Assembly: GCA_015680685.1 (NCBI GenBank)
Contig: MNCI01001903.1
Coordinates: 415,148 to 479,147, forward strand
DNA length: 64,000 bases
Source of the DNA: Gnetum montanum
Lineage: Eukaryota > Plantae > Gnetophyta
Direction of reading: 5' to 3'
Numbering within the stretch: position 1 is the first letter of the stretch; each line of letters opens with the position of its first letter. Positions 1 to 55,141 of the stretch are shown piece after piece. Position numbers and translations under genes: made by a program. Below the pieces are notes generated by a model. That model did no database searches, was not told the DNA's origin, and saw nothing but the letters and a program-made list of their open reading frames with translations.

Positions 1-166
1 TAAAGCATTATTTTCTTTCTCTTTCTACATTTTCCCTATTATTTCCTTTATACATAATGTTGAATATCACATATATTTCACATTTGATATATTTTCTTTC
101 TATGCATAATGTGTAATATATCATATATTTGATGTTTGCCATGACATCCAAGGATGGGATGTCACA
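1..166 (+). repeat. Family B 5' LTR (3' portion only)
   Basis: Aligns by eye with ~6676-6842; ends in ...tgtcaca. Confidence 0.85.
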
Positions 167-168
167 AT

Positions 169-180
169 TGATATCAAAGA
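169..180 (+). promoter_or_regulatory. Degenerate primer-binding site (tRNA-iMet type)
   Basis: tgatatcaaaga directly after the LTR versus canonical tggtatcagagc; copy 2 has tagtatcaaagc at 39461-39472. Confidence 0.7.
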
Positions 181-730
181 AAATCACAACCCAAGGGCCA
201 TTTAGAACCATGGGTCGACTACAATATGAACTTCATGATGAACCTTGAAGCCACAACACATGGAAAGCCATTGATCATCACTGGATGTACCATATATTTG
301 TGATGCAAGTTAGAAGACACCTTTCCATTAACTTCACAAATAATGGATCAGGCATCTAGATCCTAGAAACCAATAAAATTCTTTGATAGATATCATTAAC
401 CAATGAAGATTGATCACACCTCATTAACATTCATGAATTACAAGAGATGTTGATAAGATAATGATACTATCAAAAGTCACGCAAACCCTGAGATGGGTAG
501 CATTGGCCTAGAGGAGGGTTGTGTAAACCTTGAAATGGTGCATCATCATGGTCGTTGTTGGCATTCACAAAAAAACATCAAATTATGCATCATATGACAT
601 TTTTTTTTCAATTGTCCATCAATTGACGTAAAAATTTGAAATTTTTGTCATTGAATTGTTAGTTTAAATTAGAAAATTATGAAAATAGTTTCCAAAATTA
701 GAATTTCATGTGTTGGTAGCAACAAATATA

Positions 731-808
731 AAAATCCCATAATTAAGCATGCCTTCCTTGGAGTAGAACTAGGATGAATGACCTCTCGGGAAGTCTTGTT
801 TTTTGTGC
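731..808 (+). pseudogene. 5S rRNA-derived fragment (3' two-thirds, A-box to C-box region)
   Basis: aattaagcatgc...ggagtagaactaggatgaatgacctctcgggaagtcttg matches plant 5S AGTTAAGCGTGC...GAGTAGTACTAGGATGGGTGACCTCCTGGGAAGTCCTCG; the 5' ~40 nt of 5S are not seen. Confidence 0.8.
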
Positions 809-1567
809 TAAAGGTCTTAGACTCCAGAAGCCATAACTTTTGATTTTTGAAGCCTTTTTCAACAAAAAAATAGTTGTTTCCTATAGATTTCAACCTTTTG
901 GACACAATGGTGAAGTCAAATCAATCCTAAGGAACCCCAAAAATTAGGTATTACTCCTTGCCCGATATAGTGCCTTGGGATCCTCAAAAGTTTAATTTTC
1001 ACACAACTTGATTATATGATGTCCATTTTCAACATATGAATAGTCATTTCCAACATTTTTTACCCTTTTGAACTCAATGTTAAGGTTATATTTATTATTC
1101 AAACATCCAAAAATTTGATGATATCATAAATTCAACCTTTTGGATTTTAAGATTTAGTACATAACCCTTATAGATAGTCTTAAGATCACTATGGCATGTC
1201 ATTAATTACACTGCCAAAGTCAATGTTCTTAAGGGGGGTAGAAAGGACATTAAAAATTAGATAATATAGTTACATATTACTAAAATTATATGATGTCATT
1301 AAATATTACTAAAATTAGTTAATTAGATAATGTAGTTAAATTAGTTGGAGAATTAGTTGTTGTATTAATACCAGTTGATTATTAGTTAATGAATCAGTCG
1401 ATGTATTAGTTAAAGATCAATTGATGCATTAGTTGGAGAATTAGTTGAAGAAATAGAACAATATTTAGCCATCAAGAAAAGGGTATATTAATCCATCCTG
1501 TAATCAAAACATAGGGAAAAAAAACATGGAGACACAAAATCTTGTTTCGATAAGGAGTATGATATTC

Positions 1568-2552
1568 ATGAAGAGAAATGATCTAGACAAGAACCCAAGA
1601 ATGAGAGTCAAAGTTGCAACATACAACATGCCTGAAACATCCCTGGTGAGTGAGAAACAATATCCGCTATGTCCATCATGGGCCTTGGATTAGCACGAAT
1701 ATCAATACCCATGCATTTTAGCAGAATTTCAAGATTTGGATGCTAATTTCTTGTGCTTACAAGAAATATTACAATGGGAATTTCTATATCAATTTCAACT
1801 ACATTTGGAAAAGATGGAATACACAGGTATTTGTAAGCAAAAAGGTTCTTGTGGAAGTTCTTCTTTTGAGTTGTATAGATTAGCATATTGTAGAAATTAC
1901 AACATGGATGATTGTGCGATCTTTTATAAAGAAGCCAAGTTTGAATTGGAACAAAGATTTAAATGGAGTTTAGAAAATATGATTTTTGAAATTCCATAAC
2001 TTCAAGCTATGGAAAAGAAGAAACAATTAAGATTTTGGAAAAATCACATAGCCTTGGCAGTGATTCTAAAAGTTCATCTATCAAAAAAATGTGTATGCAT
2101 GATTAACACACATTTAATTGCCAAACCAACATGTTCAGATGTTAGACTTTGTCAAGGAGCATACTTGATTAAGCAAATAAAAGAAAGTTTGAAGAAGAAG
2201 TTATTCCTAAGTTGTACTAATCTAGTCCCATTTATTCTTTGTGGAGACTTCAATGCAAAATTTGGAAGTAGCATTTATCAATTTTTAAAATATTGATTTG
2301 TAAAGAAATCTTTGGAAGATGAACTTGACTTGAAGAAGATGTTTCCATCAATTCAGCACGTAATTCCATTAACCAGTGCATATTCTACTTACTTTGAATC
2401 TTTAGTAGATAAATCAGACTCTAGAATTTAGGAACATATGATGTTGATGGATAGCATGCATCAAGAACAAAAATTTACAAATTACTCTACTATGATTAAT
2501 GAGGATGAATCAAAAACATTCTTCATTAAGTCTTTGGATTATATTTGGTATG
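1568..2552 (+). pseudogene. CCR4-like: CCR4-type deadenylase (EEP family) pseudogene, 5' part, intronless
   Basis: One continuous frame through ORFs 1736, 2009 and 2438 with in-frame stops: VATYN...YPLCPSWALD*, DANFLCLQEI, INTHL, PFILCGDFN, LTSAY, KFTNY, LDYIWY. Confidence 0.9.
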
Positions 2553-3819
2553 TGTTGGCAACCATTTGGGACGCGACCGCCAACGAGTGTCCTCAAATAG
2601 GATTTAGGTGCCTGCTGGTCTCTGGCAACACCAAGGCCTAGATACCTCCAAATAAACTCAGTAGTTAATGTGAGTATGTGTGTGTGCTGTTGCGGCATGC
2701 GGTTGTGTGAAATGTAACGATTGCGTTGTGTGTAAACTACAAATGACTTACTTTAAAGAGATTCAGCCAACTTTGCCAAGTACTGTGAGTTGTTGAAAAT
2801 TTCCTATGTTGTTCAACTGCCTAGTCTACGTGGTCCTTATAATACCTACTTGTAACAAATAAAATTTTGCAAAAACATTTGAGCACAACTTCGCAATCTA
2901 CTCCTAATTTTCCCCAGAGAAAGAGATAGTTCCATAAGAAAACTAGAAATAGAGCAAGATTCAATGGAAATAGACAGAAAAGAAAAGAAAGCATATTTAT
3001 GTAGACCTCAAATATTTCAACAAGGTAAAATGACACAAGTAAACACTTCGCAATAAAGCTATCCCAAATTCAATATCTACGAATTGTTCAAACTTCCAAG
3101 ACTCAAACAAGCAATTTCTTCAACACAATCCTACTATGCTACCAAAAATTGCTGCGTAAACTACCACGTACAAGACTCCATTTTGACTAGATAATAGATG
3201 TCAACGATTACATTCAAACAGAACCTTTAAAAGACTTGACAATTTCTGATTGAAATACCATGGAAATTCACTTTAAAGATAAAAAGAAGCTATTCTGGTC
3301 CCATCAAAATACCAAAGATTTTCTGAACCCTCTTGACTACTGAATTGTTCAACGGCGTGACTACAAACAGAGGCTTTCTTACAACAATCCCAATAGTAGT
3401 TCCAACACGTTGCACAATAACGAAATTTACTACTAAAATTCTCTTAAGGCTTTTAAACACAAGCACTTCTATGGCAAAATTTTAATAGAAATTTCTATTG
3501 GGCAACAAGAACAATAAGAGCAATCTAAAAATCCCAAAATTACTTGCCAAGGATGATACTATCTAAACCACTAGCTAAGCAATTTAAACAAAACAAAAAT
3601 AAAACATAACTTACAGGACTATGACAAAGAGTCTGAAATCTTTCCTTTAGCAAGCCATCTTACAAGCAATCGTTCACACTTTCTTCCTTACAAAATGCTC
3701 TTCTCCCAAGACCCCAAGTGTGTCTCCAAGTGAGAGCCCAAGTGTGATCCCAATGTCTTCTCAAAAGTGTGATGTATGAGACCACAAGTGATCATCCTTC
3801 CTCCTTGACCCCTGAAGCC

Positions 3820-3855
3820 TTTTTATAGGGTTCAAAGGTAGGTAGGGAAGTTACA
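3820..3855 (-). promoter_or_regulatory. Putative LTR core promoter (TATA box ccctataaaaa on minus strand) at the conserved/variable boundary of family A
   Basis: ttttata(g/a)ggttcaaaggtaggtagggaagt is conserved in all three copies (3820, 31869, 46089); homology stops immediately after it. Confidence 0.65.
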
Positions 3856-3899
3856 AAATATCTTGGGTGGTTTAACCACCATAGAGATAAAAAAGCTAC

Positions 3900-4085
3900 A
3901 ATGGACAAGTGTCCTATTGCATGGCCAAGTGTCTTCATTCAGTTGCCAAGTGTCTTCATTCAATTGCCAAGTGTCTTCATTTAGTTGCCAAGTGTTCACC
4001 ATGGAGAGAAACAAGTTACAGTTGACACGTGTCCCATTTAGTTGACAAGTGGCCTTTGTAGTTGACAAGTGGCCCTTGTAGTTAC
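3900..4085. repeat. 20-21 bp tandem repeats with CAAGTG cores and a palindromic G-box (gacacgtgtc, 4024-4033)
   Basis: agttgccaagtgtcttcattc about 3.5 times; gttgacaagtggc(c/t)ttgta twice. Confidence 0.85.
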
Positions 4086-4258
4086 AACCACTTCAAAGAT
4101 TAAAAAGCTATGGTTCCCAAGTGTTCTATTTCATTACAACCACCATGGTAGTGTTAAAATTAAGTGTTCAATTCATATGGGACTTAGAACAGTTGTCCCA
4201 TAACACTTTTTTTCTTTTTTAAGTCATATCATATTTTATTTGATTTCCCTGTGCAAAA

Positions 4259-4675
4259 ATCGGGAACAAAACAGTTGCGATAGAGAAATCGGAGAACATA
4301 GTAATAGAACTTCTAGAACCGGATAGCGACAAGAGCATGGTGGCAGCAGTTTTGTGGCGTTTTGGGGGCATTGGAAAATCCACCATCGCAGAGGCAGTGT
4401 ACGCAACCATAGACATGGACGAGTACATTTTCTGCAAAGTTGTGCTCTTCGATCATGCCAACAGAAAATCGAGCCTGACCAAGGTGCAGAAGAGCCTTCT
4501 GGACCAATTTGCAGAACCCAACCAAGAATGGGAAGAACTCACATCCCCAACAGAAGGTCAAATGGCTCTGCACCATTACTTCAGGGAGGTTACCTACTTC
4601 ATCTTCATTGACAATGTTCTGGAAATGAGAGAGCTCTGGAAGCTCATGATTCTCATCACTGCTCGCAATATGAAT
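4259..4675 (+). pseudogene. NB-ARC (plant NLR) domain fragment captured inside LTR A1
   Basis: Open frame IEKSENIVIELL...VLWRFGGIGKSTIAEAVY (P-loop), LTKVQKSLL (RNBS-A-like), YFIFIDNV (kinase-2), ILITARN (RNBS-B); no GLPL or LRR. Confidence 0.85.
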
Positions 4676-5635
4676 GCCCACAAAGATCCAGATATCCACA
4701 ATATCATAGGTACAGTAGCACCTTGTAGGTAGTATTTACAACTTTTCACGTAATAAAGGACAGACATAAAATCATTGGCTACAACTAGCAAGCCACAAGC
4801 TCATGAAACTGTGGAATACAGAGAAAAACGAGAGCGATGACAAAGTTAAGGACCGATTATGCCAGTAGCAAATGGTAAGCCCTGAACAAACGTGATTGGC
4901 CAATACTTGAATCAAATTCGCAGTGCCACGTTTTGTTGTTGAAAAAAACTAGTAAAGTAGTCTGTAATGAGAAAAACTACGCTGAAACCCTAAACCTGGG
5001 AGGGGAAAACTTGTACAGCTTGCCGTGCAGTGAGAAAATGACAAGGCCGACCTTAGTATTGCATAGAATGGAGAGTTTGTATGCTCTTTTTCAACAGTCC
5101 GTTTGGGCGCTTTGAGAAAGTCACCTACTGCTACCACTGTTAAAAGTTACTGCCGCTACCATGCCCTTAATGAAACTCACAGCCATTACTGAAAACCTTC
5201 ATACCTTCTTCGCATCCCTGCTATTTTGTGTTTTTCTGGTGGTGGTTTTGTGTAGGGTTTCAGTGCACCTTGGGATCTCCTACAACTTTTTGCGCTTGTT
5301 CTAAATCAGTATTTCGAGCAACGTCAATGGTGGTGGTGTAGAGCAACGGCTGCGGCGGTGTTTTTTGGCTTGGCCGTGACCTTGCGGTGGCTGTGTATTT
5401 TCCATAATAAATTATAGAAACAACATGATGTCCAACTATGTACAGGACAGCGGCTTGGTTTTATGGGTCCGTTAGAAAAATTAGATTTTTACGATACAGT
5501 AAAAACCCAATTCTAACAACTTATTCTTTCATCAGTCTTTATCCAAATGAAATATTGGCAATGTTAGTTATATGATTAGCTTCACAACCTCACAAAGCAT
5601 GCTCCATTAAATGGCCAAAATGTGCCAATAATATG

Positions 5636-5813
5636 ATGTTTGATTCTTTCAAGTTACCAAATTACTAGAGTTGATTTCTAAAGAAGAAGTTGAGAAGAAT
5701 CAAGATCAAGCCTTGCCATCCCAAATATGATCATTTGATCATATACCACTTATGGTAGCATTACAATTACTTCCATCAGTTCATAAGGTTGATCAAGATC
5801 AAGAAGTATCTCA
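5636..5813 (+). pseudogene. CCR4-like: CCR4-type deadenylase pseudogene, 3' part
   Basis: Resumes in frame after the TSD: FQVTKLLELISKEE...QALPSQI*SFDHIPLMVAL (LPS...SDH catalytic motif); 3' end approximate. Confidence 0.88.
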
Positions 5814-6224
5814 CTCTTACTTTTATTTGATGATCTTATTATTTTATTCATTGTTTAATTTATATTTCAATTAGATAAGTAAAATATCTATGATAATAAA
5901 AATTGGGGATAAATAATTTGCCCTACCTTCACTTGGATAACTAGATCCATGTTGCACTTTGTATGATCTTGATTAGGATTGGTGATTAGTGGTTGATAAA
6001 TCTTTAATTCACCTTTTATCATTATCTTAGAAAATGAAGTATCAAGAAAGTAATATTTAATTTTTCATATATTTTTCTCACATATATTTTGTTTACAAAA
6101 TAAGCAAGAAAAAACTTCATGTTCAAAGGAGAAATCAAATTATTGGAGCATAGGATCATGAAAGAAAGCATTGGAGTTGAAAAATGATAGATAATGTGGA
6201 CTCGTTCGAGGATGAAGGAAACCT

Positions 6225-6236
6225 AAGGAGGGTAAA
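6225..6236 (+). promoter_or_regulatory. Polypurine tract of family B
   Basis: aaggagggtaaa just before the 3' LTR; copy 2 has ggggagggtaga at 44606-44617 before tgtcatatc. Confidence 0.7.
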
Positions 6237-6237
6237 T

Positions 6238-6842
6238 TATCACATCTTCATTCCCAAATGATGCTACTAACTAATGACGATGGTGTGTCTTCATAACAAG
6301 TGTCATTGTTATCTTAACAAGACCTGAAAGGGTAGTTGTGATTAAGACTTGAAAGGGCATGTTGTAATAATGGATGTGTCTCTTAAGGTAACCTTTGGGG
6401 GTTTTGCCTAAGGCATTTATACCTAGGGTTAGAGGTTATGCCAACATGGAATGGTGGAGTTGGTACAAGCAAGTCATGGGGTGGCGAAGTTGGAATAGGC
6501 AAGTCATAGGAAGTTGGGTGAAGTGGAACAAGAAGTCGACTAGCCATCCCTTCTAGTTAGGTTATAGGCCTAACCATGGTGGAATTGCTAGATTGCCTCT
6601 AAGGTATAGATGCTAAAGGAAGAAAACCCCAAAGAATACTCTCAGAGCATGATCCAGATACGCTATTTCATATCAATAAATCATACTTTTCTTTCTCTTT
6701 CTGAATTTTTCCTATTATTTCCTTTATCCATAATGTTGAATACCACATATATTTCACATTGATTATATTTTCTTCATACACATAATTTCTAATATATCAT
6801 ATATTTGACATTTTCCATGACATCCATGGATCGGATGTCACA
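6238..6842 (+). repeat. Family B 3' LTR (605 bp)
   Basis: tatcacatc...gatgtcaca termini; homologous to 38941-39458, 44619-44811, 27096-27400 (rc) and 56721-57292 (rc). Confidence 0.85.
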
Positions 6843-12300: not shown

Positions 12301-12891
12301 TTCTAGGTTGCCATAAGGGGTTCATCATCATGATCAAGTTCATAAGATCTATGGTAGTGGTGATCCCTTCTATGGTCATGCCTCTCTTTATCCTCTCTTC
12401 TCTTTCTATGTCTCCTTCTTTCATACTTCATCTTCTAAATTAGAATACCTGGAGCATCGGTCAGCTCTTCTCTTTTCCCTATTCAAATCTCAACACTTGT
12501 GCTATCTCTTGTCATAGTTCTCTGATGATCATCATGAAGTAGAGGAGGTAGAAGGAAAATAATGTTAACTAGTTCTCCTTTCATAACTCTTATGAGTTTC
12601 CTTATAAGACTTAGTAGGATCCCTTAGCCTAGAGTCCTCCTTGTATCTTGAGTTAGTAGCCTCCCCCTTGTGTGGCTCTATCAGGGTGGAGTGAAGTTAA
12701 GCTTTGACAAGTTCTTCTAGTTTGATGATAGGTGTCTTTGATGGCTCCTCATGGTTCTAGTGGAGTTATTTTGAAATGAATTGATCAACATCAAGCTATT
12801 CTATGATAATAGATGTGTTGGCTTACTTCCCTTTGGTATGATCATGCTTGATTTCCATAGCAACATCTTTATTTATCTAGTTCCATGTAGG

Positions 12892-14726
12892 TGTTGATGC
12901 ATAAATTTTGGATGCACCAACACTTAGAAAAACTTGTTTAAGGAGACTATCGTCTAGGGCACCTCCTGTATGGGTACTAAAACCTGAGAATAGTCTCAGC
13001 TAGAGAGGGCTATGTAACATTTTTAAAAATAATAGATCAAACTAGAAAATTGGGAGAATTTAATTTGAACAATTGTCTTGAATTTTAATGAAAATACAGT
13101 AACTAATAAATTTTATAAACTTTTACCTGGTCTTCTACTACTGCCGCCGGTGTAGCTGCCAAAATGTGCTCTCTACTAGGCAAGAAAATCCTGATCGCCG
13201 TTGGAACATGTTGTCTTGTGCTCGTCCTATGTTGTTAGTGATGGAGAGGGATAGGGAGAGAGAGTGTTGGTCGATTGCTCTTGCTAATGCATCTTTGACA
13301 CACAACAATAGATGTTGCCAGTGTAACTACTATCATCGTGCCCTATGTTACCATCAGGAGAGCCTGCTGCTAGGAGAGCCTTCCACCGATGGGAACCTTT
13401 CACGCTTGTCACTATTAATGTCCATGCTTGCTACTACTTTTTTCTACGCAAGGAGGCTACTTAGACTAGCTACATGGTGTTGTTGTCATGTGTAGTGTGC
13501 AACTTAGAGCAGTCACTACTATTTTGCCACATGCATTGCCTCACCCCACACATCATTAGCTTGATGCTCTGATGCCACCAAAGAAAGAGATGCCACTGTT
13601 AGTTCATCTTGCTGGTTGCCTTTGACATGTGGAAGTTTGCAAACATTTCTACCACTATATACAGGTCTACTACTATCTACATGCCTAGTACAGTCTACGA
13701 CGTTGCACTGCTAAAGCTAATGGGCCACCACATTCGCCCCATTGTGATTGCCACATGCTCACCTACAACCACCTGCTCATCGACTTAGGCACATTGTCGA
13801 AGGAAGTAAGAAGTTGAGATCTGTCCCTACCAAAGAGGGGAGGTTGCCTGATGATACTTTCCACAAACATTACATAAATGCATAACTGGCCACTGTCTCA
13901 CCACTCATGCACTACGTCGCCTATTGTCACTCCTGATCATGCACTGTGCCATGTGCTGACGTTGTCAATCACCTACTACCTCTATTGATTCATCACTATT
14001 GATGTTGTCAAAGAGAGAGAAAGAGAGAGGGAGATGCAGTGTGTGTCCATCAACTTAAATGTGCTCCACCAAGCCCTGACTTCTGTCCCACCTCTTCCAA
14101 TGCCCAACACATTCCACCTTTGCTATTTTAATAGTGGTTGTAGCTTGGTGGCATTGAATGCCCATGTCCACACCTATAGCCATTACCATGTCGTCCACCT
14201 CCTTTGGCCATTATGTCCACCACCCAGGCCATTATGTCCACATCTACCACTACGTCTACCACTTGCTCGTGCATACTACCTTGTAACGTCCACCATCAGT
14301 ACAACAATTCATCTCCCCTATGCATTAGTCTACACTTTCACAACTCTCAATTTAAAGAATATTTTATGTTTGTAGAAAAGCCCATATCATCATCTAAGTT
14401 GTATTTTGTGCTATGCTAAAAGTTAGAAAACTTGAAAGATAGCCTTGGAAACACCAAAGGGAAAGCTGTTGTGGACCACCATTCCATGCATAGGTTGACC
14501 ATGGTTAACTAATCATGAAACTAATTATTTAATAAATGAGTTTTATTTTGTGAGTTCATATTTCCTTAAAAAATTTTATTTTGAAAATAAGAGTTAACAT
14601 GATATTGTTGAAGAATAAATGCCTATTGGTAAAGATAACATATTTATAGGACTTTTTAACTTTCATAGTATTTGAACTTATTTAAACATGGCCCCATGCC
14701 TAACATGGGTGATGTTGGCATCAACA
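12892..14726 (-). repeat. Family C 3' LTR
   Basis: Direct repeat of 19165-20977. Confidence 0.92.
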
Positions 14727-16094
14727 GTTAACTCCCAAACTAAAAATTACATGCAAGTGTAAGGAACAACAAAACTACAAAAATTTTAAAAGGAGATGAA
14801 AAAGATAGAGAATTGAAAAGATCATAAAACAAATAAATTTAAATTTAAAAATAAACTATACTGATCTAAACATGATTAAAAATAACCATATAATCAAGAG
14901 AGAACTAAACATGGACCACCCTTACCACACCATCTTATTTAATCAAGACCACAATATGTACTCTTTATAAATCATAACTTTAACTACATAGATACATATA
15001 TATAATTAAAGTATATAACTAAGACCACATTCCCAATATTCTCACAAGGTATAAGTCAAAAGTATGTGGACTACTTTTGAGCATGAGACATATGCCAAAC
15101 TTAATGAAGAGGACAAGCTTATCTTAGATCATAGTAGCCACAACTTTTGGATTTTTTCTTAGGACTCTTTTCTTTTCTTTTCTTTTTCCTTTTTGACATT
15201 TAGAAAGGAAATGGATGAAAAAGGATTACTTGCTTTTCTTCTTGTTTTCTTCAATTTTAGAAAAATAAGTTGAAAAAAGAAAATGGAGGCTAGGGTGAGG
15301 ATTGCTAATGGACCCCATCACACTCAAGAACTTATTACACTGCCAATGAACATGGACCTCATTCTTTTTATTTTGTTTCTTTTTTTTTTAACAAAACCTT
15401 GCTCATGGTATACTTCATTTCTAAGGTAGGAATTCCAACATGAGTCTGGACAATGAGCTGCATTGCCAAAAAACATAGTCCTTTCAAAAAATTGCCCATG
15501 GTGTAGTTCAATCTTTTTGTATGTGCCTTTTAATTATGGCATCATAGCAAGTCTCCTGGGTGGCTAAGGGTTCTCAAGTGGAGATTAACACACTTCACCC
15601 TATCGATCATAAGGTAGCCATGGATCATCACACTTGAGGGTTGGGGCTTATGAGAGAGAAAAAGGCATTTTCCAAGGTCACCTAGTGATTATGGCTAACC
15701 ATTCTCCAACATAACATATCCTACACTCACATGATCATGATGATTACATAGTAAGTAGCATAAATCCCATCCTCCATAATCCAACATAACAAATAAAACT
15801 AAAACCTTGAATAAGAATGGGAAGAATTGTAACATTATTAAAATATTTAATATAAAGGAGATTTTAAGTAATAGTAATATGATATATTATATAAAGCATT
15901 ATGCTTACATTATTCTTCAATGGTGTTATGATGACCCAATGCCAATTAACCATAATGATTATTAAAATCATATGAAAAGCACAAATTAGACCAAAACCAA
16001 TATGCTAAGAAAGAGATTATGAAAATGTAAAGGAAATATGCAAATGCAACTATATACAAATGAAATGCATGGTGAAAGAAAAGAAAACATGTAA

Positions 16095-18950
16095 CTAAGG
16101 ATCTACCAGGTGTCCACGTGGGGCATCTAAGTAGAAAGTCTTTAGATGAAATGCATTAAAATTTCTAGATAATTTATATCCTTGCAAATTAGTAATTTTG
16201 TGAACATTGGGGTTAGTGACATCTATAACTTGGAACGAGCCTGACCACATAGGAGAAAACTTAGTTTGAGAATTGGTTTGACTAGATGCTATATCTTTTT
16301 TTAGGACTAGATCTCCTATTTTAAAGACTTTACCTGCATGTTTCTTGTCAACCATCGTTTAACAATCTTTCGATGATTAAGATTATGAAAATCAATACAT
16401 GATCGTAATTCACTTGTTTTTTTTTTATAAGGCACTAAATTTGATGTCCAACTTGAATGTTTTATAAGATGAATAATCTTAGATTCTAAAATTTCATCAA
16501 TTTTTTCTTTCATCCAAGTTTCAATCTTAGGTCTAATAGGTCCATGTTTTTGTAAGTCATTGATTACAGCTTCTTTAGGAACATGTTCAATGGATATGTT
16601 GTCAAAATTTGGCACACCTTCTAATTTTTTAATGGTTGGAATCTCATTTATATCTTTGTCCTCCCCTAAATGTGGCGGGTCACTCAAATCAAATCCATCG
16701 TGTTGATGATAAGGCAAGGTATCTTCATAGATTTCTTCACCTTCTCTAAAATATTGATAAGGTTGGGTGGAATCTGTATGAGAAAAAGGATTTAGTTTTT
16801 TAATTTTACTCACATGGTCATTTATAGCATGTTTGTCATGCTCAACCTCAATAACTCCAATATAAAGATTAGTGTTTTGATTTTCCAAAGATTGATTTTA
16901 TTCATCAAAGCTTGTAACTACTTTTTTATAGAAAGGATCTCTTGGTATACCCATATATTTAGATTTCCCTTTCATGGGAATTAATAATTCTAAGAAAAAT
17001 TACCTAAAGAAAGCCCCAAACTTGGCTCCAAAATTCCTATATAAGAGCACACCATAAGTGGGTGACATATTAACTACTAAGATATTTGTATAACATGTAA
17101 ATGTAGGGTATTTTTTAAGTGGTACTTTCACTCCTTTTAATGACCCTACTATAGGTATGTTAGACCCATCAAGTTGTATCACACTTCTTGTTTGTGGTAG
17201 CATTCATGCTCCTAAGGTTTTACATACCTCAAGTGTCATGACACTAATAGTTGCTTCAAAATCCATCAAATAATTATGAATGCTCTTTCATAAGATAATC
17301 AAAGTTGTTAGGAAAGGAGGTTACTCTTTTATGCTCATCATGGAATTATTTGTGTTTTGTATTAATAACACATTAGAACTTTCTGCGAAGTGAACTTGCC
17401 TTTCAGGGGTTGGGGATTCTACTTTTTTAGTTTCATGTGTATGAACTATCTTTTGAATCACATCTTTCATTTCACTAAAGTGTAAAAGATCATACATTAA
17501 AATGTTAGCTTTAACTCTTTTCAAATCCTCAACTAGATCATAAGTCTTATGTTCATCTTTGGCTTCCTATTGAGGTGGATTTCTTCTAGGTATGGAAGGG
17601 GAATTTGGTCATTGTGGGGCATTTGCATGGGATAGCCTAGTTTTTTTATTTGTGTTGTTTTGACTAAGAACTCTTCTATTTGGAGGAGTATAAGGATTAT
17701 TCCTAGTTTGCTGTTGTGTGGTGTTCATAATGTCGCTAAGTCTCTAATAACGAGTGCTATGTGGGTTGGGATCACTTACCATGACTTGTTCAAATGAAGG
17801 AACTTCCTCATTCTCGGTTTCATGGGGTATGTTCAAGGTCATAATTGGGGATTTCCCATTTTGTTAACTTTGGACATTGTCACCATATAATGCTAAAAAT
17901 TGAGGACAAGTCTTCTCAACATGTTGCCTAGTGTTATGAAGATGACAATAATCATCATTGACTAATGTACTTGGCTTTTCAAATTGTATAGGAAGCTTGT
18001 TGTTATTTTGCTTTAATTCAACTACTTCATTTGAAAGTTTTTAAAATGAAGTTAATATCTAGGTCATCTAATTTTGAGTTTGAGTTGCAGGGTTGACAGG
18101 ATTGGATATCCCATTTGGGTTTATGATTTATTGGATTAAGGCTTTCGATTGGTTGTCATTCAAACTAGTGTTGGATGGTAGAAATGAAAAAGATGTGAGA
18201 CCTTGAAAACAACTATCTATATGTTGAGTCATTTGAAGGGAACTAGAATTTTTAAACATAGTATTGATCCTTGGGAAAGTTGGTAATGATAGAGGACTAG
18301 ATTACATAAGGTTACTAACTCTCATCATCCCAAATTGGGTTTGAATGTTATTCATGAGGGTAATTTTTTCTAACTTGATGGCTTTAGCCATTGCTCCCTA
18401 TATTTTTGTTATTCTGGGATCAAATTTGATGGCATAGGCAAAGAGTGGGTCAATGATGAACAAGTAAAAATTAAGGATGCCACCAGGATGTTGACACATC
18501 TCACTTGGTACATAAGCAAGTTGATGAAGGAATCTTAGGTTGTAGTCACGAACATTTTTCCCTGGTATTTTTCTTCAACTTGTAAAATTTCTTGATGCTA
18601 TGGTCAGGCTAGTAAACTTGTCAAACTGAAGCAAAAAATTATTTTTTAATCCTTGCCATGAGTCGATGGAGGCATCAGGGAGCATCAAAAATCATTGGGT
18701 GGCTTTGCTCCTAAAAGTTGTCACAAATACCCTACATGCTATGTTGTTTTGAAAAATGTTATGGATCCCTAGTAAGGTTTCAAAACATTGTATATGTTAG
18801 CGGGCATGACTAGTAGGGATTGTAGGATCAAAGAACAAGTTTATGTTTTGGAGTGATTTTGGGATATAATGATAGTTAGTGAAGTTAAAGGGGTTGCTCA
18901 CCAAGGGAGCTAAGGGTTGATTGCCTATCCTCCTAGTTCTAGTTGTCCTA
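16095..18950 (-). pseudogene. gag-pol: gag-protease-RT(N-term)::integrase(C-term) remnant of family C
   Basis: gag ACRVFVTTFRSKATQ*F...SIDSWQGLK; protease region VIQLDGSNIPIVGSLKGV; RT start SSWTSNLVPYKKKTSELRSCIDFHNLN runs directly into integrase tail FKIGDLVLKK...KFSPMWSGSFQV. Confidence 0.85.
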
Positions 18951-19164
18951 GGTATGGAACTTGGAAAATGTGAAGCTCATTGTTTTCTTAATGAGACAAG
19001 AGTTTTCAATAGGGAGCACAAGAAAATAAAATTTAGGGAAACAATAGTTTTAAAATAGGAACAAAATAGAATCAGGAATAGGAAAAAAATGATAAGAAAA
19101 ATTGATATTTTAGAAAATGAAAAACAAAGGCTAAAAAATGGTCCTTCTTTTAGTGCCAAGAAGG

Positions 19165-20977
19165 TGTTGATGCATAAAATTTGGACACACCAACACTTGG
19201 AAAAACTTGTTTAAGAAGACTATTTCCTATGGTGCCTCTTGTATGGGTACAAAAACCTACAAATAGTCTCAACTAGAGAGGGCTATGCAACTTTTCCAAA
19301 AATAATAGATCAAACTAGAAAATTGGGAGAATTTAAATTGAATAACCATCTTGAATTTTAATGAAAATATAGTAACTAATAAGTTTTAAAATTTTCCTTG
19401 GTCTCCTATAGCTTCCATCAGTGTAGCTGTCAAAACATGCTCTCTGCTAGGTAGGAAAACCTTGACTGTCACCAAAACATGCTATCTCACACTTGTCCTA
19501 TGTTGTCGGTGATGGAGAGGGATAGGGGGAGAGAGTGTCAATCTGTCACTCTTGCTAATGTGTGTTTAATGCACAATAGTAGCTACCTTTGGTGTAGCTG
19601 CTACTATCACATCCCATGTCACTGCTAGGAGAGCCTATCATTGGGAGAGCTCATCGCCAATAGGAACCTTTGACATGCACCACTGTTAATTCTTGCAATT
19701 GCTACTACTATTTGTTGGGGAAGGGAAGCCTCTTAGACCAACTACACACTGTCATTTTCACATGCAACGTGTGGCTCGGAGTAGCCATTGCTATTCTACC
19801 ATGTGCACTACCTCACCCCACGCATATGCCACTATTATTCCTTCTACCACATATTGTTGTAATACCACTAGTCACCTCTGATGTGCAGCATTTTTTGGAC
19901 ACTTCTACCATTATTTACACATTTGCTACTATCTGCACACCTGGTATAGTTTGTAATGTCACACTACTGGAGCTAATGGGCCACCACATGTGCCTCCTGC
20001 GATTACCACATGCTCACCTATAATCGCTTGTCCCTCAACTTAGGCATGCTATCAGAGGGAGAAAGGAGATAAGATCTACCCTTACTAAAGAGTGGAGGTT
20101 GCCCAATGATACTATTGATGCATGTTATGTGCACGTGTGCCCGACCATTGTCTTGCCACTTGTGCATCTCATTGTCTATTGATGTCGTTGATCGTGCACT
20201 CTGCCATGTGCTAACATTTCTGGTCACCTGTTGCCTCTATTGATGCACCACTATTGACATCGTTAGAGAGAGAGGGGGGGAGAGAGTGTGTATGTGCCTA
20301 TTATCTCAGACATGCTCCACTTGGCCCTAACTTCCATCTCCCCACTTCCGATGCCTAGCATGTCCTAGCTTTGCTATTTTAATAGTGGCTACAACTTGGT
20401 GGCATTAAATTCCCACATCCATACCTATTATCATTACCCTGTCATCCACCTACTTAGGTCGTTACATCCACCACCCAAGTCGTCACGTCCACATCTACCA
20501 CTACATCCACCACTTACCCATGCATACTACCTTGTAACGTCCACCACCATCACAATGATTCATCTCCTCTGTGCATCGGTCTACACTTTCACAACTCTCA
20601 TTTTAAAGCATATTTTATGTTGACAAGAAAGCCCATATCATCATCTAAGTTGTATTTTGTGTTGTGCTGAAATTTAGAAAAGGTGAAAGGTAGCCTTGTA
20701 AACACTAGAGGAAAAGTCATTGTGGACCACCATTTCATGGATAGGTTGATCATGGTCAACTAATCATGAAATTAATTATTTAATAAATGATTTTTATTAT
20801 GTGAGTTCATATTTCTTAAAAAAAATTTATTTCGAAAATCAACATTGACATGATATTATTGAAGAATAAATGCCTATTGGTAAAGATAGTAGACTTATTA
20901 GAATTTTTAATTTTCATGGTATTCAAACTTCTTTAAAAATAGCCCTATGCCTAGCATGGGTGATGTTGGCATCAATA
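19165..20977 (-). repeat. Family C 5' LTR
   Basis: Direct repeat of 12892-14726. Confidence 0.92.
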
Positions 20978-21936
20978 GTAGGTTCGTAGGGTCTGGTCAT
21001 GTTTTGAGTCACATGATACCCTTCTTGAATCTAATCTAAGTGCATTCCTCATAAAGCAGTTTGTAGCATGGTTGGTGTTGCACATTTGGGAGGTAAAACT
21101 ATGTTTCCTTGCATATCTATCCACCTCATTTTTTTATCCTAATGGAATACGAAGGTGAAGTCTGGATGATATGGATCAGTTTTATAGCCTTCCACAAATT
21201 TAGGGATGTTATTCATAACAAGCCTTTTGATGCAACTTTCCTATGATGCCTATGGGGTATTCTAACTACCTCCATTATCTTCATCATGATCCTAATATCC
21301 ACCAAGGGTTCATCATCATCAAACATGTTGTAATGATGATTTCTATTTATATTTATCTAATTATGATGATCTTGTCTATGCTCACTTTGATGATCACATC
21401 TATTTCTATCTCTATCTTCGTCTTGACCCCTTGGTGTATCTCTATCTCAATACCTACATTCATCTTCATCAAAACTAGACGAGGAAAAGGAAGATGAATA
21501 TGAGGAACTGGGAGAATCACCATGGCTCCTATATTTTCCTTTTTGGTTCCTTAATGTATCTCTTCTAGGTTTGGAATAAAACCTAGGCCTTGAGACCCTC
21601 CTCATTCTAGCATGTGTTCCATCTTCTCTACGATTGTCTACATTAGTTGAATGTAGTCTTTGAGTGTAGTAAGGGTCTAAATGAGCATAGGAAACCCCTA
21701 CTTGTCATTTTTCACTCCAATTCTCTTTAATATATATCCTATCATTTCTCCTACGAGTGTTATCATCATATGATGCATTATTCATCCTATGTAAAGAAGA
21801 CATGGTTTTATTTGATAATATGTGTGACTTATAATATTAATGTTTCCTAAAAGATAAATCATTAATAATTGTACAGTGATTGTTTATGATATAACTAATA
21901 TTAGATAACTAGCACCATCCCCAAAAATAGTGCCAA

Positions 21937-22879: not shown

Positions 22880-25140
22880 CCCTTATCTCTATCCTTGAAT
22901 CTGCTTACTCAGGTTGGATATCTTTTAGTAAGTGTAGTAAGAACTCCAACATTATGCTTCATTGGAAAATGGAATCTAATTCTAAGTATCTATATTAACT
23001 TCTTCTTTCTTGATAAGTGTCATTGGAAAAAACTTGAGCTTATGTCATTTGTTCTTAATGTTTTATAAGGTTCAAGAATCATGGAAGACTTGCAAATGAT
23101 TTTGAAAATCTATATTATAGCCTTCCTCAAATTGAGGAATGTTATTCATGTTTAACACCTTAATGTGGCTCTTCTTCTTATGCCTAGTTGGAATGCAAAT
23201 AGCCTCCCTAATATTAATAATACTTTTGGTAGCCAAAAGGAATTCATCATAGTTCTTTAGTTCATCATAGTCTTCATCATGATCATGACCCCCTCTATGT
23301 TCTCTACCATGCCTATGGCCTCAATATCTTTCTTTTTTTCCATTTAAATTTCTTTCTCTATCTTCATCACTATCTCTACCAAGATATCTATCCTAGTTTC
23401 TTCTTCAATCACTGAGAAGTTGTCAAACTTATCCCCCATTTGTGGCCCCATCTCCCAATCTATATTCATCCTTGTTAAAGCTAGATAATGAGGATGATGA
23501 AGAGAATGAAAAATTAGAAGATCCATGTTGATTTTCTATCCTTTCATGATCCCTCTGATTCTCGCTTCTTTGCCTGCTAGAGGACCTAGGCCTAAAGTTC
23601 CTTTACATGTTGGATCCTATTCCACCTATTCTTTAGTTACTTGTCAAGGCAAAACATAGTCAAGGATTACTAGTTTCATCAATGTTGAAGATAGAAGGCT
23701 ATTAATGATGGGATCTTCTTGTTTGGTAAACAATGTTTTTCTTTTCTAATTCAGCTATCAAGGAAATGTTAATGTGTTTACCATTAGAAAATTCATAGTA
23801 AACATTCATGAAATAATATTGGCTACATTATCCTTTTATGAACTTGTATCATATAGACATTTCATCAAGCACTTTATGCTAACTTACAGTAGCTGCTACC
23901 CCATTCTTAATCAATGTTATGGTGAGCATTGATGGATCTCCCTTATCAAGTAGCAACGTAATTTTTTCTTAGAGGTCCTACCATCTGATTGGTTCATCCT
24001 AGTGGAAGACAAAGGTGAATTCAAAATAGTAGAAATCTAGATAATGATGAATGACTTTCACTTGATAGGATACATTAGCATCATTATTATAATTGATCCT
24101 ATAACTATCCTTTATAGTGTTATTAGTAGATGGGAAATAAACCCTATGAGAAGTAAACATATTTGATCAAAATGTATATTATTATAAATTCTTTTTAATA
24201 TTTCTTGACAGAGAAATCATTAAAAATATTTTTATAATGATGTTATGTAATCTAACTTCCTAAACTATCAGTATCATCATTGTAATGGGCTAATGATGAG
24301 CAATTGAGTACACCCTGCATCCAATCATATGACCCATAGGTATTGCAAGTGATCATTTCATAATCCATGAATGGTTACTATTACAAACACTTAGAAGTTA
24401 TTTGGTGAACCAATGATCATTGTCTTTCCACTTGGACTATTTATGACTCTAATGTATATGGTTTAGCCCATAATGATGTGCATAATTATGATGTCCTGAA
24501 GCATTAAACTAGCTAAATTAAAATTATAGAAATTAATTATTTAATCTAATGAATAATGGAATAAATCCTAATCTAGCCTAAGGATGGTGGGCATCCATTT
24601 CTAATTTTTCATACACATCATAGACTACTATAGCCACCATAGGGATTACAAAGCAATATGCTACTAAGTGTACTATGACTATTGGGCTATCAAAAAATTA
24701 CATGTTACATTCCAAAAAATTTGTACGTATTCCACTAATTCACTATCATGCATGGAAATGTAAACCGTTAAGCTAAGTACATTGGAATATAAGAAACATA
24801 GAAAACTAAATGCTTTGAAAAGTAATATTTATTCTAAGTCATAATGTTGCAATAAATAAGAAATAATCTCAAGCTTATTATTACCTTATAATGTGTTTAG
24901 GTATAAACCACTTGAATAAGATAGATAACTAGTTCGAATCCAAACTATGGGCACTCACTAACTACTACTAAAATTATGAAATAAAACTAATAAGGTCTAG
25001 CTCCAATTATAACTAAAAGATGCATTCAATGTGATAGGTAGGTAATATTTATAGCCAAGACCACCCTTGGATACCTTGCATTAGAACCTACAATATCATA
25101 TCTATGATATCCTACTTGAAACATTTATTTTTTATCAATA
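22880..25140 (-). mobile_element. Family D fragment (LTR 24294-~25140 plus 5' gag)
   Basis: IPQFEEGYNIDFQNHLQVFHD gag motif near 23150-23080; LTR homology from 24294. Confidence 0.65.
23880..24099 (+). repeat. Source of 220-bp near-identical inverted duplication
   Basis: Reverse complement matches 45175-45394 with 3 mismatches. Confidence 0.95.
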
Positions 25141-27095: not shown

Positions 27096-27400
27096 TGTAA
27101 CATCCCATTTCTAGATGTCATGACAAATGTCAAATATTCGTAACATTCAACATTATGCCTAAAGAAAATAATAGGGAAAATGTAGAAGAAAAATGAAAAG
27201 AATACTTTATTAATGTCGAATAATGTATATGGGTCATGCTCTAAGGGTTCCTTAGGGTTATCTTCCTTTGACATCTATCTCTTAGAGACAATCTAGTACT
27301 TCCACCATAGTTAGGCCTATAATGGGCTAGAAGGGATTACTAGTCACCTTTCTATCTTGCTTCACTTGACATGTGTTACTCACCTTTAATAACTTTGAAA
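27096..27400 (-). repeat. Truncated family B LTR
   Basis: tgtaacatcccatttctag terminus; rc matches ~39170-39458 (both give the spurious MSKEDNPK.PLEHD ORF). Confidence 0.8.
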
Positions 27401-30090: not shown

Positions 30091-30819
30091 AACCACTGAT
30101 AATACTAACACCTCTAATCAAGAACAAGCATATTCCATTTTTCAAATCTCCTCCCTCCAACTTAGTTGTGGCAGAGATATTCATCTACCATAAAGCTTGA
30201 TGAGGAAAAAATATTTGTTTTGTTCCTTTTGTTTTATAATGTTCTTTATATTTTTTTTCATTTTCTTAATATTTTCTTAGTTATTTTATGTATTTCCTTT
30301 TATTTATTATTATCTTGTTCTTTTCTTGTTGATTTCATTCAATCTCATTTAAAATCTCATATTTTGTTCCATTGCTATTGTAAATTTTCAAAATTGTTGA
30401 ATGCAACTATCAAAGTTATGATTGATTAATAATAGAAAAAATTGTCCTTGGATTATGTTTCCTACTAATTTTCTATTAGTTTTCTAGTGGTATCATGGAG
30501 TGAGTTCACAATGTCCACCCACTTCATCTATTTCTTGTGGAGTCTACATCATGAGACCATGGGATTCCTTCACATTAAAACTAAAAATTAACACATGATC
30601 TTCTTACCTAATGAACTAGGAAATGAGAAAGTGAGAATGGAAAATAGTGTGATCTCAAGAGGACTTTATGTATTCTTTCTCAAACTCCTTCAGTTTTATG
30701 GATCTTCATAGATATCTCATCACTCCTTCTATTGAGCATAAAAAAAAAGCATATCTTTGCATGGTGTGGTTCCAATAAAAAAATAACATGAATTCAAAGT
30801 ACATTCCTTAGATAATATC

Positions 30820-33096: not shown

Positions 33097-35169
33097 ATAT
33101 CATGGGCTACAAGCACTGGTTATAGTGCTAGAAATACATGTTACTCATGCCTAAAGGCACTCCTCTAACTAAGGTCCTACTTACTTCATATTTATTCTTT
33201 CTGTCTTGGAGTGATAATGGTTGTCATGGGTTCTTGAGGTAGAATAGAAGGGATATATTAATGCAAGATCATTGAAATTAGAATGGACTTGGTCTAGACT
33301 TGTAATGAATTAGTATTAGATCATCTTAATCATAAATTTCACTAAGGATCCTACATGACTAGGATGCAGATTATCCATCCATCGTTCTCTAACTACCATC
33401 CACTGACTTGATCTTCTATCACCTTATTGTCTCGTATCATGGTAATTTTATAGTTTTATTTTACAGTTCACATAATCATAAGGCAATTGCTCATATGGGT
33501 GTGAAACTTAACTTAAAATAACCATTCATTATCCTAGAAACCTATGGACTCCTTGTGATGTAGTTCTACAAGGGCATACTTAGCATGTGCCTACCTTAGA
33601 AAGGATCCACTTACATTTGTTTTAGCTTAACTTAAGCTAAATTTCCTAACCATAGGTCATTTGTACACTTGATCATCGCAGTAGCCTTAAAAAATCTATT
33701 TTTTTGTTGTCTTTTCCTTGGACTATCCTTTAACAAATCATCTGATGCATTCTAATTACTTCTATTTTCTGAACCATACTCTCTTTCATGTTGTTTCTAT
33801 GATTCTTCATCTTTTTTTACTTCCATTTGTCTCTTATTTTGATCCAAAACTTACCCAAAATTCCTCAATTTTCAAGTGAAAAATTTACCTATGAATAGCT
33901 ATGTCAATGCATCCTCATCGATGTAGTGGGATGAGTCAATGTAGCCTTGTTGACACATAGCAAAAATACCATAGATATGTGCAATACTTAGATTATTTTT
34001 CATCATTTATTTTAAATAAAAAATGAGTTTTTATGATTTTTTAAAGCTAAAGAATCTTCCAAGAACTCTAACTTTCAAACTACTTACTTGAATTTGCCCA
34101 TTCTTTGATGCTTGAGCTACTAGAGGTATGCTTTACTTCATGGGGGCATTAAACATTAGGGTCTTACAAAAAATTTTCTAACTCTTCATGAATAAGATAT
34201 TAAAAGAATATTAAACTAATAATCACAAGAGATAATATCAACAATCAACCTCTGTTAGAATGTGAATAAAATAATAACATAAGCTTACAATCACTTAATA
34301 AGAACTTAATGATGAAATTCCAATATCTAACTAATATTCATTACTTGATCTAATACAGAAAGGTATCTAAAGAAATCAAAATATTATGCCTAAGAACTAA
34401 TCCTAGGTTATGTTTGTGACTATAGATGGTACTCAAGAAAGGACCACAAGTAGGAGGGTTATTATAGCCCAGGGAAAAATGATCACGATGACAAAGGAGC
34501 CAATAACAATAACAACAATAACAATAATCCTAGTAGTAAGCAACCAAAGCTACTCATGCTACTGGAACCTTACAAGGAGGAGCCTAAAGTGGAATTTGTT
34601 CGGTAGATTCCTATATTAGAAATAGGATAATCTAGGAAGGATGAAGTTTTAAGGTCAAGAGCTAATATAGAGGTTACACTTATACAAGCTTGAGTGGAAA
34701 ATGTTTGAATGAAGAATATTTAGAGCTTCATGATGCAGAAGCTGAACTTTGGACCATTCCTAAAGCTTTTAGTAGAAGAGATCTAAACATAACTACAAGG
34801 CTCTCTTCTATGATCCATCCTCTCCACTAGTGAAGAATTACATGTGGGAGAGACATACCTCTTCTAGAACAACCAACAAGGAGATGTAACTATAAAGATT
34901 AAAGACATCACCATCTCCTACTTAGTTTAGGCAATAAAAAAGATCCTCAAAATTCTAGATACTAGGACAAAGCTAGCAAAGATATGAACATAAGAAAACC
35001 CTGAAGCAAAAATGGTATTTGGTTTATAGGGGACTCAAAGGAATTAGACATAAAGGGAGATGGAGAAACAAGATTGCCAATCCCAAGTGTATGTCAGGGC
35101 TTAGGTGGATTGTTGGGTTAGAAGAACGGTCTTTTCTTAGATCAAGTGTTTGAACCGCTCGATCGATGA

Positions 35170-55060: not shown

Positions 55061-55141
55061 TTAGCCTAGATTACATTCATTGATAATTCACTATAAAAAT
55101 CATTTTACTAAAAATGTAACCCTAAGTGTAACATGCTCAAT

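Follow-up and report, generated by a model that had tools for sequence, protein, structure and literature searches.

Putative solo LTRs of a Gnetum montanum retrotransposon family with unrelated U3 bodies between conserved anchors

Three copies of an LTR-like unit in a 64,000-nucleotide stretch of Gnetum montanum DNA (hereafter the window) are alike at both ends and unrelated in the middle, which raises the questions of what kind of element they represent and how the middles came to differ. Copy 1 (2553–5630) is a complete, LTR-like unit of 3078 bp that ends in TG..TA and has an empty site in a paralogue. Copy 2 (30820–33096) has TG..CA ends and perfect ATATC duplications, and contains a gap of 485 Ns at 31270–31754. 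Copy 3 (45399–47801) is cut at its left side, the presumed U5 side, and has CA at its right end. All three copies are located on the same strand, assigned as minus from the TATA block described below, and have approximately 1.3 kb in common at 91–92% identity.

The common sequence is distributed over both ends of the unit. The left block, the putative R-U5, has a length of approximately 1.24 kb (2553–3790 in copy 1, minus strand) and is 91–92% identical to copies 2 and 3. Positions 2553–3002 of copy 1 and 30820–31269 of copy 2 are 91.1% identical (K2P 0.096), and positions 3199–3783 of copy 1 and 45399–45980 of copy 3 are 92.5% identical (K2P 0.079); divergence among the three copies outside the variable part, or cassette, is 8–10% (K2P 0.08–0.10). 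The right end is formed by a conserved terminal block of approximately 30 bp (5600–5630, minus strand, in copy 1; 33065–33096 in copy 2; 47772–47801 in copy 3), which would correspond to the 5' end of U3 and the integrase att site. The block begins at 5600, 33065, and 47772, and all three right-hand boundaries agree to the base. The pattern described in the initial annotation, of copies that are alike at the left, unalike in the middle, and alike again over a short terminal block, is confirmed. Two conserved 23–24-mers had 0 exact matches in metagenome contigs.

The middles are 1.2–1.7 kb long and mutually unrelated (3856–5599 in copy 1, 31900–33064 in copy 2, and 46125–47770 in copy 3). Standard blastn found no match among them, and at word size 7 with +1/−1 scoring the best matches reached 25–28 bits, compared to 24–30 bits in shuffled controls. 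Homology of the middles, which the initial annotation had named as evidence that would count against it, is thus absent, with scores no better than those of shuffled sequence. The cassettes have a GC content of 0.45–0.56 and a CpG observed/expected ratio near 1, unlike the remaining LTR. Their cores reach ratios of 0.9–1.1, compared to 0.24 for the whole window, and the core of copy 2 (31990–32620) combines a GC content of 0.48–0.56 with a ratio of 0.9–1.14. The conserved LTR parts also hold ratios of 0.3–0.9; therefore, the CpG richness claimed earlier for the cores stands, but with a smaller contrast than was implied, and their gene-like character is limited to one recognizable gene, in copy 1. 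Of the four longest stop-free frames in the 64 kb, two fall in cassettes. The motif AAACCCT is approximately ninefold enriched in the cassettes according to a post hoc test, with full telo-boxes only in copy 1. Rfam searches of the whole window at the gathering threshold, and of the three copies at E ≤ 1, detected no real RNA family; the lone row, with an E-value of 0.4 and far short of the gathering threshold, is attributable to chance.

The borders of the copies are those of insertions. Copy 1 is preceded by GTATG (2548–2552) and followed by ATATG (5631–5635), a match of four out of five positions. Its flanks run uninterrupted in a 73%-identical paralogue (43570–44802), where a single GTATG (44009–44013) marks the empty site. 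Copy 1 is a discrete insertion. Its TG..TA ends differ by one base from TG..CA. Copy 2 is flanked by perfect five-base target-site duplications (TSDs) at 30815–30819 and 33097–33101. The TG..CA ends with 5-bp TSDs that had been ascribed to the copies are thus exact in copy 2, degenerate by one base at each feature in copy 1, and limited to the right-hand CA in the truncated copy 3.

An 8-bp inverted terminus is common to the copies, and the perfect terminal inverted repeat (TIR) extends over those 8 bp only; no longer inverted match was found, and a TIR transposon was therefore rejected. Local alignments between the two terminal 300-bp stretches of the units scored 16–18, compared to a mean of 18 for shuffled sequence; TRIM and LARD elements were rejected because of this lack of terminal direct repeats at the unit ends. 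Because the copies have neither terminal direct repeats, nor long TIRs, nor marks of nested insertion, their sequences are best read as solo LTRs, one of them truncated. The window contains no full-length element, and no PBS or PPT flanks any copy; the copies are assigned to LTRs, and oriented, by means of their ends, their TSDs, and one TATA block.

The TATA block, the putative core-promoter anchor, is nearly invariant. It is located on the minus strand at 3821–3851 in copy 1, 31869–31899 in copy 2, and 46090–46120 in copy 3; copies 1 and 2 agree at 31 of 31 positions, and copy 3 at 30 of 31. The zero to one change per 31 bp compares with 8–9% elsewhere, with a rough chance probability of 0.03. 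A 23-nt anchor is present exactly in all three copies and nowhere else within the window (0 occurrences expected by chance). The block is the sole strong TATA in the conserved part, and from its strand the placement of the variable part in U3, as the initial annotation had it, is judged the most plausible. The non-homology would then be limited to U3, the ends of which are conserved, as is R-U5; this arrangement hinges on the orientation taken from the TATA block. The minus strand of the putative R-U5 (2553–3790) contains no canonical AATAAA; plant signals are loose.

The left breakpoints differ among the copies. Copies 1 and 3, at 97% identity over the promoter, remain similar for approximately 20 bp past the anchor, further than copy 2, and have no similarity beyond. 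Copy 2 has variable sequence on both sides of the TATA block, and departs from the other copies just downstream of it. Differing left breakpoints are expected from independent replacement events.

The cassette of copy 1 is composite. Its first 345 bp (3856–4200) form a tandem array with units of approximately 100–120 bp, subrepeats of 20–21 bp, and a CpG observed/expected ratio of approximately 0.1. The array contains eight CAAGTG motifs, oriented like four more in the conserved sequence at 3650–3820. This part of the cassette is the family's own CAAGTG array and not host DNA, and the earlier reading of the cassettes as captured host sequence is not supported for it. The array shows growth of U3 from within the family. 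It is followed on the minus strand by an AATAAA and, 14 nt later, an A6-G-A7 tract (4207–4240), which resemble an mRNA 3' end. The resemblance is suggestive only, as the window contains such a tract approximately every 3.4 kb. The cassettes are not enriched in poly(A)-like tracts relative to the remaining window, and for this reason evidence from poly(A) tails was downgraded.

Positions 4244–4729 of copy 1 (plus strand) contain a fragment of an NB-ARC (NLR) gene that extends from the P-loop to kinase-2/RNBS-B. The 162-codon open frame, antisense to the presumed LTR sense, matches Pfam PF00931 (E 1.6e-6) and MLA13 in the PDB (E 3.4e-4), and has codon periodicity (p 6e-6). The fragment is genuine host coding sequence. 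No donor is present within the window, and a comparison with proteins of similar length, whose length filter leaves out full NLRs, returned no match. The remaining foreign part of the cassette (4730–5599) has a GC content of 0.40–0.46, a CpG observed/expected ratio of 0.5–1.0, and no recognizable gene.

No host gene could be identified in the middles of copies 2 and 3, and the middle of copy 2 has no Pfam or Rfam match. Copy 3 includes an AT-rich stretch (46150–46500), a T14 run (47075–47088; A14 on the minus strand), and an open frame of 158 codons on the minus strand (46486–46959). The frame has 0 relatives among 1.84 billion representatives, a recognition score in the protein atlas under the level typical of real proteins, and weak codon periodicity (p 0.075), and was not accepted as a gene on these three grounds. 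A Pfam search of 30 further stop-free frames from the cassettes gave no credible match. The systematic replacement by captured host sequence that had been proposed is not supported: a host gene is identifiable in only one of the three middles.

We consider it probable that the three copies are solo LTRs that belong to one family of plant LTR retrotransposons, in which the LTR is modular and its U3 body has been wholly replaced. Read along the minus strand, the LTR would consist of the 30-bp att block, a dispensable U3 body of 1.2–1.7 kb, the 31-bp TATA block, and an R-U5 of approximately 1.24 kb. Selection may retain only what integration and transcription require, and the U3 body could therefore be replaced in its entirety. 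Such replacement by non-homologous sequence would have occurred at least two times while the other LTR parts diverged by 8–10%. The material appears to be mixed, combining motif arrays of the family itself with foreign GC- and CpG-rich DNA, including the host NLR fragment in copy 1. The likeliest route may be template switching, or illegitimate recombination, during reverse transcription of U3. Because U3 is copied at the 3' end of the element RNA, a change there would enter both daughter LTRs and be inherited by the lineage, and later LTR–LTR recombination would leave solo LTRs.

Several observations speak against this proposal. The NB-ARC fragment is antisense, whereas the sense orientation would be expected if the minus strand had simply switched onto an mRNA. 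The identity of the right-hand boundaries to the base is not obviously predicted by independent random events. The lack of an identifiable host gene in copies 2 and 3, of a canonical AATAAA in the putative R-U5, and of a full-length element in the window, the poly(A)-like tracts at background frequency, and the repair-type filler at copy 3 described below count on the same side.

A stronger form of the proposal, which we regard as rather unlikely, makes U3 a high-turnover acceptor slot, in which most transposing lineages gain new host-RNA-derived sequence between the fixed att block and the fixed core promoter, and almost all copies have a cassette of their own. Some cassettes would then run antisense to NLRs or other host genes. 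In a more radical form, the single LTR-like unit would itself move. Evasion of silencing and borrowing of promoters by the cassettes, which the initial annotation had suggested, are conjecture.

Rather unlikely, in our estimation, is that the middles are the native, fast-evolving U3s of three long-separated lineages, each present in many copies, with the NB-ARC fragment as a one-off passenger and no special capture involved. With 8–10% divergence, the three copies may represent three old lineages, as do Tnt1A, B, and C, instead of per-copy swapping, and three such copies cannot separate the two. The K2P distances of 0.08–0.10 outside the cassette, the departure of copy 2 just downstream of the TATA block, the home-grown array at the start of the copy 1 cassette, and the absence of host-gene matches from copies 2 and 3 all suit old subfamilies, for which the Tnt1 superfamily provides a precedent (PMC1838419). 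However, cassettes that differ from other LTR parts in GC and CpG content, and host coding sequence inside one of them, are not what native U3s would lead us to expect. Neither is the abrupt loss of similarity between copies 1 and 3 beyond a promoter that they share at 97% identity.

It is improbable that the unit of approximately 3 kb is itself mobile and carries Pack-like cargo, either as a non-autonomous element moved by an integrase or Ginger-type transposase, or as an integrated single-LTR product of reverse transcription. All copies are single, with intact ends and TSDs, as mobility of the unit would have it, but three copies inform the ratio of solo to full-length elements poorly. The unit's ends are imperfect inverted repeats of each other over approximately 20 bp, of which just 8 bp are a perfect TIR, whereas Ginger and GingerRoot elements have TIRs of tens to hundreds of base pairs and 4- or 6-bp TSDs (PMC6839031), to which the copies do not correspond. 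The 5-bp TSD is typical of LTR elements; those of Ginger1/2 are 4 or 6 bp, and GingerRoot has 6-bp TSDs with TA..TA ends (PMC6839031). Furthermore, the internal position of the TATA, with a long block downstream of it, suits a U3-R-U5 layout.

More improbable still is that each copy received, at one and the same site, an insertion of an unrelated element into a short ancestral U3, or filler from DNA repair. Where copy 3 is truncated, a patch of 220 bp (45175–45394), which is a 98.6%-identical inverted copy of 23880–24099, shows that repair-type filler at the DNA level also acts at this locus. The cassettes have no flanking TSDs, TIRs, or LTRs, each is unique within the window, and insertion would have had to occur three times independently at one base of the 31-bp block. 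Nested insertion was rejected on the lack of TSDs and TIRs around the cassettes; nested elements with their own TSDs had been listed in the initial annotation as a second finding that would speak against it, and none was seen. An assembly artefact, in which a collapsed repeat was misjoined to unique sequence, is barely credible: the assembly is fragmented and copy 2 contains the 485-N scaffold gap, but copies 1 and 3 are gap-free over both anchors, both ends of copy 1 lie in one host context that is contiguous in the paralogue, and the TSDs of copy 2 match at both ends.

If per-copy turnover is true, LTR U3s would be a large unrecognized route by which giant plant genomes shuffle host sequence, among it promoter-proximal, 5'-exon, and immune-receptor sequence. 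Antisense gene pieces would also come to lie within retrotransposon transcripts, which bears on small-RNA cross-talk between transposable elements and NLR genes. If the cassettes are instead the U3s of old subfamilies, the family would be a large-format case of the modular LTR evolution known from Tnt1. Its main relevance would in that case be to annotation, as consensus-based repeat libraries will split or miss such LTRs.

The copies resemble Pack-MULE, Pack-CACTA, and gene-carrying GingerRoot elements in combining fixed ends with variable cargo, which is host-derived in those elements (PMC6839031, PMC13317346); the initial annotation had drawn this analogy. Pack-type DNA transposons have long TIRs and TSDs of 9–11, 3, or 6 bp, and gain their cargo at the DNA level, whereas the present copies have TG..CA ends, an 8-bp TIR, and a 5-bp TSD.

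Bs1 is reportedly an LTR retrotransposon that carries a gene fragment. LTR retrotransposons with gene fragments are also present in rice and sorghum. In maize, 425 of them were described, none of which held more than one gene, and the position of the captures within the element was not stated (PMC2774510). Gymnosperm genomes contain approximately 400,000 gene fragments each that were captured by transposable elements, biased to first and second exons (PMC13477047). Copy 1 is similar to these elements in that a host coding fragment, NB-ARC, lies within the element boundaries, and the GC- and CpG-rich, 5'-end-like pieces in the cassettes suit the reported exon bias (PMC13477047). However, in those reports the captures were not placed in U3, and no family-wide variable slot was reported (PMC2774510, PMC13477047).

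Chimeric LTRs that arose by aberrant template switching are known from BARE-2, which has a Wis-2 segment in its LTR, and from Veju_L (PMC13317346). As in the route proposed here, foreign sequence entered the LTR during reverse transcription and was then inherited by the lineage. The donors were other retroelements or unknown DNA, each in a single event, and multiple unrelated replacements between the same anchors were not described (PMC13317346).

A further likeness is to the copia elements Tnt1, Retrolyc1, and Retrosol of Solanaceae, in which U3 is modular and hypervariable and variation is restricted to it (PMC1838419). In the Tnt1 superfamily, as here, the remainder of the LTR and the element are similar, and lineages are defined by U3s that cannot be aligned. 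Escape from host control and new expression patterns have been proposed as adaptive readings (PMC1838419). The variable part of Tnt1 consists of a few hundred base pairs of regulatory repeats common to many copies of a subfamily, whereas the cassettes described here are 1.2–1.7 kb long, GC- and CpG-rich, different in all three copies, and in one case contain a host gene fragment. LTR elements are already known for U3-restricted variability and for gene capture, of which kilobase-scale replacement between fixed anchors is a variant.

Comparison of the window with itself reveals three copies of one LTR-like repeat on the same strand: copy 1 at 2553–5630, copy 2 at 30820–33096, which contains a gap of 485 Ns at 31270–31754, and copy 3 at 45399–47801, the left part of which is missing. 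Copies 1 and 2 are 91.1% identical (K2P 0.096) across 2553–3002 of copy 1, and copies 1 and 3 are 92.5% identical (K2P 0.079) across 3199–3783 of copy 1. The conserved part runs up to a 23-nt anchor, which is identical in all three copies, has no other occurrence in the window (none expected by chance), and sits within a 31-bp block bearing a minus-strand TATA (3821–3851, 31869–31899, and 46090–46120). In the 67 bp preceding the anchor, copies 1 and 3 share 97% identity. At the far end, the copies have in common a terminal block of 30–31 bp that starts at 5600, 33065, and 47772, respectively. The variable parts, or cassettes, lie between the two blocks (3856–5599 in copy 1, 31900–33064 in copy 2, and 46125–47770 in copy 3) and are mutually unrelated. 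Standard blastn among them gave no matches, and with a word size of 7 and +1/−1 scoring the best matches reached 25–28 bits, compared with 24–30 bits for shuffled cassettes. Self-comparison, blastn, and the shuffled controls thus bear out the initial annotation, which described three copies with shared ends and unrelated middles.

Copy 2 has TG..CA termini and is flanked on both sides by a perfect ATATC duplication. Copy 1 has TG..TA termini flanked by GTATG and ATATG, and its flanks are stronger evidence of a discrete insertion than its ends. Flanking segments 2111–2552 and 5632–6423 are continuous in a paralogue at 43570–44802 (73% identical), which has one GTATG, at 44009–44013. This is the empty site for copy 1, and it fixes both ends of the copy as the result of one insertion event. 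The right end of copy 3 is CA; on the left the copy is truncated at 45399, where a 220-bp patch (45175–45394) adjoins it. The patch is an inverted copy of 23880–24099 (98.6% identity) that sits precisely where copy 3 breaks off. It resembles ectopic filler left when a double-strand break was repaired from a template 21 kb away, or it may be a small mobile element that is very young. As ectopic filler, it shows that DNA repair has also been active at the copy 3 locus.

Copy 1 is nested in another, plus-sense LTR element (1–6842). The LTRs of this outer element end at 166 and 6842, their last 166 bp are 86.7% alike, and the element has a PBS-like sequence from 167 and a purine-rich tract at ~6208–6234. 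By eye, its internal region resembles a decayed CCR4/EEP-type gene; the two frames tested, 1736–1999 and 2009–2296, have no Pfam matches. A second copy lies at 43421–44811 (73% identity), and related LTR pieces are located at 27098–27387, 38941–39456, and 56723–57294. The last of these abuts a tandem array (53300–57740) of ~270-bp units with 77–85% mutual identity. Direct repeats of 1.85 kb at 12878–14728 and 19151–20979, 75% identical and 6.3 kb apart, could be paired LTRs left by an old element, or both could be solo LTRs from a different family. No stop-free frame in the window is longer than 16319–16897 on the minus strand, whose 193 codons have strong periodicity (p 1e-8) and an AT-rich third position; it has no Pfam match. 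For a proposed 5S rRNA fragment at 731–808, there were no Rfam matches in the window at the gathering threshold, below which a short fragment could fall.

The repeat unit is not a long-TIR transposon, nor is it a TRIM or LARD bounded by small LTRs, because its first and last 300 bp lack direct similarity, their inverted similarity stops at the 8-bp terminus, and the scores equal the shuffled mean. TG..CA ends and a 5-bp TSD are the signature of LTRs. The TSDs of Ginger1/2 are 4 or 6 bp, and GingerRoot has a 6-bp TSD, TA..TA ends, and TIRs of 100–150 bp (PMC6839031), in contrast to the 5-bp TSD and TG..CA ends of the Gnetum unit. No PBS-like sequence follows and no PPT-like sequence precedes any of the three copies, which are solo or truncated; the 64-kb window contains no internal region of the family. 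Exact scans of metagenome contigs with two conserved 23–24-mers gave no hits. An LTR is the best reading of the unit, though the window holds no full-length element, which would be the strongest proof. Only one strong TATA occurs in the conserved part; it lies on the minus strand, in the block that varies least across the entire unit, and in copy 2 this block has variable sequence on either side. This argues for the TATA block being a constrained core promoter, which would place the variable part in the U3 of a minus-strand LTR. The absence of a canonical AATAAA from the minus strand of the putative R-U5 (2553–3790) counts against this orientation, although such signals are loose in plants.

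The variable part of copy 1 is composite. A tandem array at 3856–4200, with units of ~100–120 bp and subrepeats of 20–21 bp, contains eight CAAGTG motifs oriented like four others in the conserved segment 3650–3820. The motif occurs about once per kb in the window and is absent from the remainder of the copy 1 cassette. The array is home-grown U3 growth rather than capture. An open frame of 162 codons follows on the plus strand (4244–4729). It matches Pfam PF00931 (NB-ARC; E 1.6e-6) and residues 190–290 of barley MLA13, from the P-loop to kinase-2 (E 3.4e-4), and its codon periodicity is strong (p 6e-6). The frame is a genuine piece of a host NLR gene and runs opposite to the inferred sense of the LTR. 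Beside it, the minus strand carries AATAAA and, 14 nt on, an A6-G-A7 tract (4240–4207). The remaining segment, 4730–5599, has a GC content of 0.40–0.46, a CpG observed/expected ratio of 0.5–1.0, and no recognisable gene.

The core of the copy 2 cassette (31990–32620) has a GC content of up to 0.56, a CpG observed/expected ratio of 0.9–1.14, and no Pfam or Rfam matches. The CpG-rich core of copy 3 spans 46500–47400. Along the minus strand, an A14 tract (47088–47075) is followed by a 5'-UTR-like start, a 158-codon frame (46959–46486), and AT-rich sequence extending to the anchor, a layout that looks like that of an mRNA. A search of 1.84 billion representative proteins gave no relatives of the frame, the protein atlas does not recognise it as natural, and its codon periodicity is weak (p 0.075). 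A- or T-rich tracts like those of copies 1 and 3 number 19 in the window, and the two within cassettes represent no excess. When the stop-free frames of the 64 kb are ranked by length, two of the top four are inside cassettes. CpG depletion is far milder in the cassettes than in the window as a whole (observed/expected 0.24), although the conserved LTR parts also retain 0.3–0.9. The telo-box core AAACCCT occurs at 4985, 5260, 32207, 32575, and 47071; in a post hoc test, these five in 4.2 kb of cassette compare with 0.13 per kb elsewhere in the window (shuffle mean 0.46). Full AAACCCTA motifs are confined to copy 1, one of them being a 12-nt telomere-like run.

When an LTR retrotransposon replicates, the 3' end of its genomic RNA supplies the U3 of both daughter LTRs. 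The outer ~30 bp of U3 (integrase) and the core promoter must survive, and the rest is free to vary. The fixed terminal block, free middle, and fixed TATA block match these constraints. The U3 body would have been fully replaced at least twice while the rest of the LTR diverged by 8–10%. Separate replacements are expected to leave different left breakpoints, and copies 1 and 3 remain similar for ~20 bp past the point where copy 2 diverges; the right-hand boundaries coincide to the base in all three copies, which separate random events do not obviously predict. Being only three and 8–10% divergent, the copies may simply be three old lineages. For replacement of the U3 body, the likely route would be illegitimate recombination or template switching during reverse transcription, processes from which the known chimeric LTRs BARE-2 and Veju originated (PMC13317346). 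The antisense NB-ARC piece is at odds with the simplest form of this route, a switch onto sense mRNA in minus-strand synthesis. Its orientation would require a plus-strand event, an event at the DNA level, or a transcript that was itself antisense or chimeric.

The initial annotation had proposed that U3 is systematically replaced by captured host sequence ('Pack-LTR'), possibly as a means of evading siRNA silencing or borrowing host promoters. A modular U3 with unrelated middles and an NLR fragment in one of the three copies uphold part of this proposal; systematic swapping is not established from three copies, and evasion of silencing and promoter borrowing are conjectural. The term 'Pack-LTR' is absent from the literature searched. 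Hypervariability limited to U3 is well documented in the Tnt1/Retrolyc1/Retrosol superfamily, where it is modular, defines lineages, and has drawn the same adaptive speculation (PMC1838419). In maize, 425 LTR elements carry captured gene fragments, none from more than one gene (PMC2774510), and such capture has recently been reported in gymnosperms at very large scale, with first and second exons favoured (PMC13477047). What may be new compared with these systems is the combination: replacements on the kb scale, rich in GC and CpG and in part genic, that are confined between two fixed U3 anchors and differ in every copy (n = 3).
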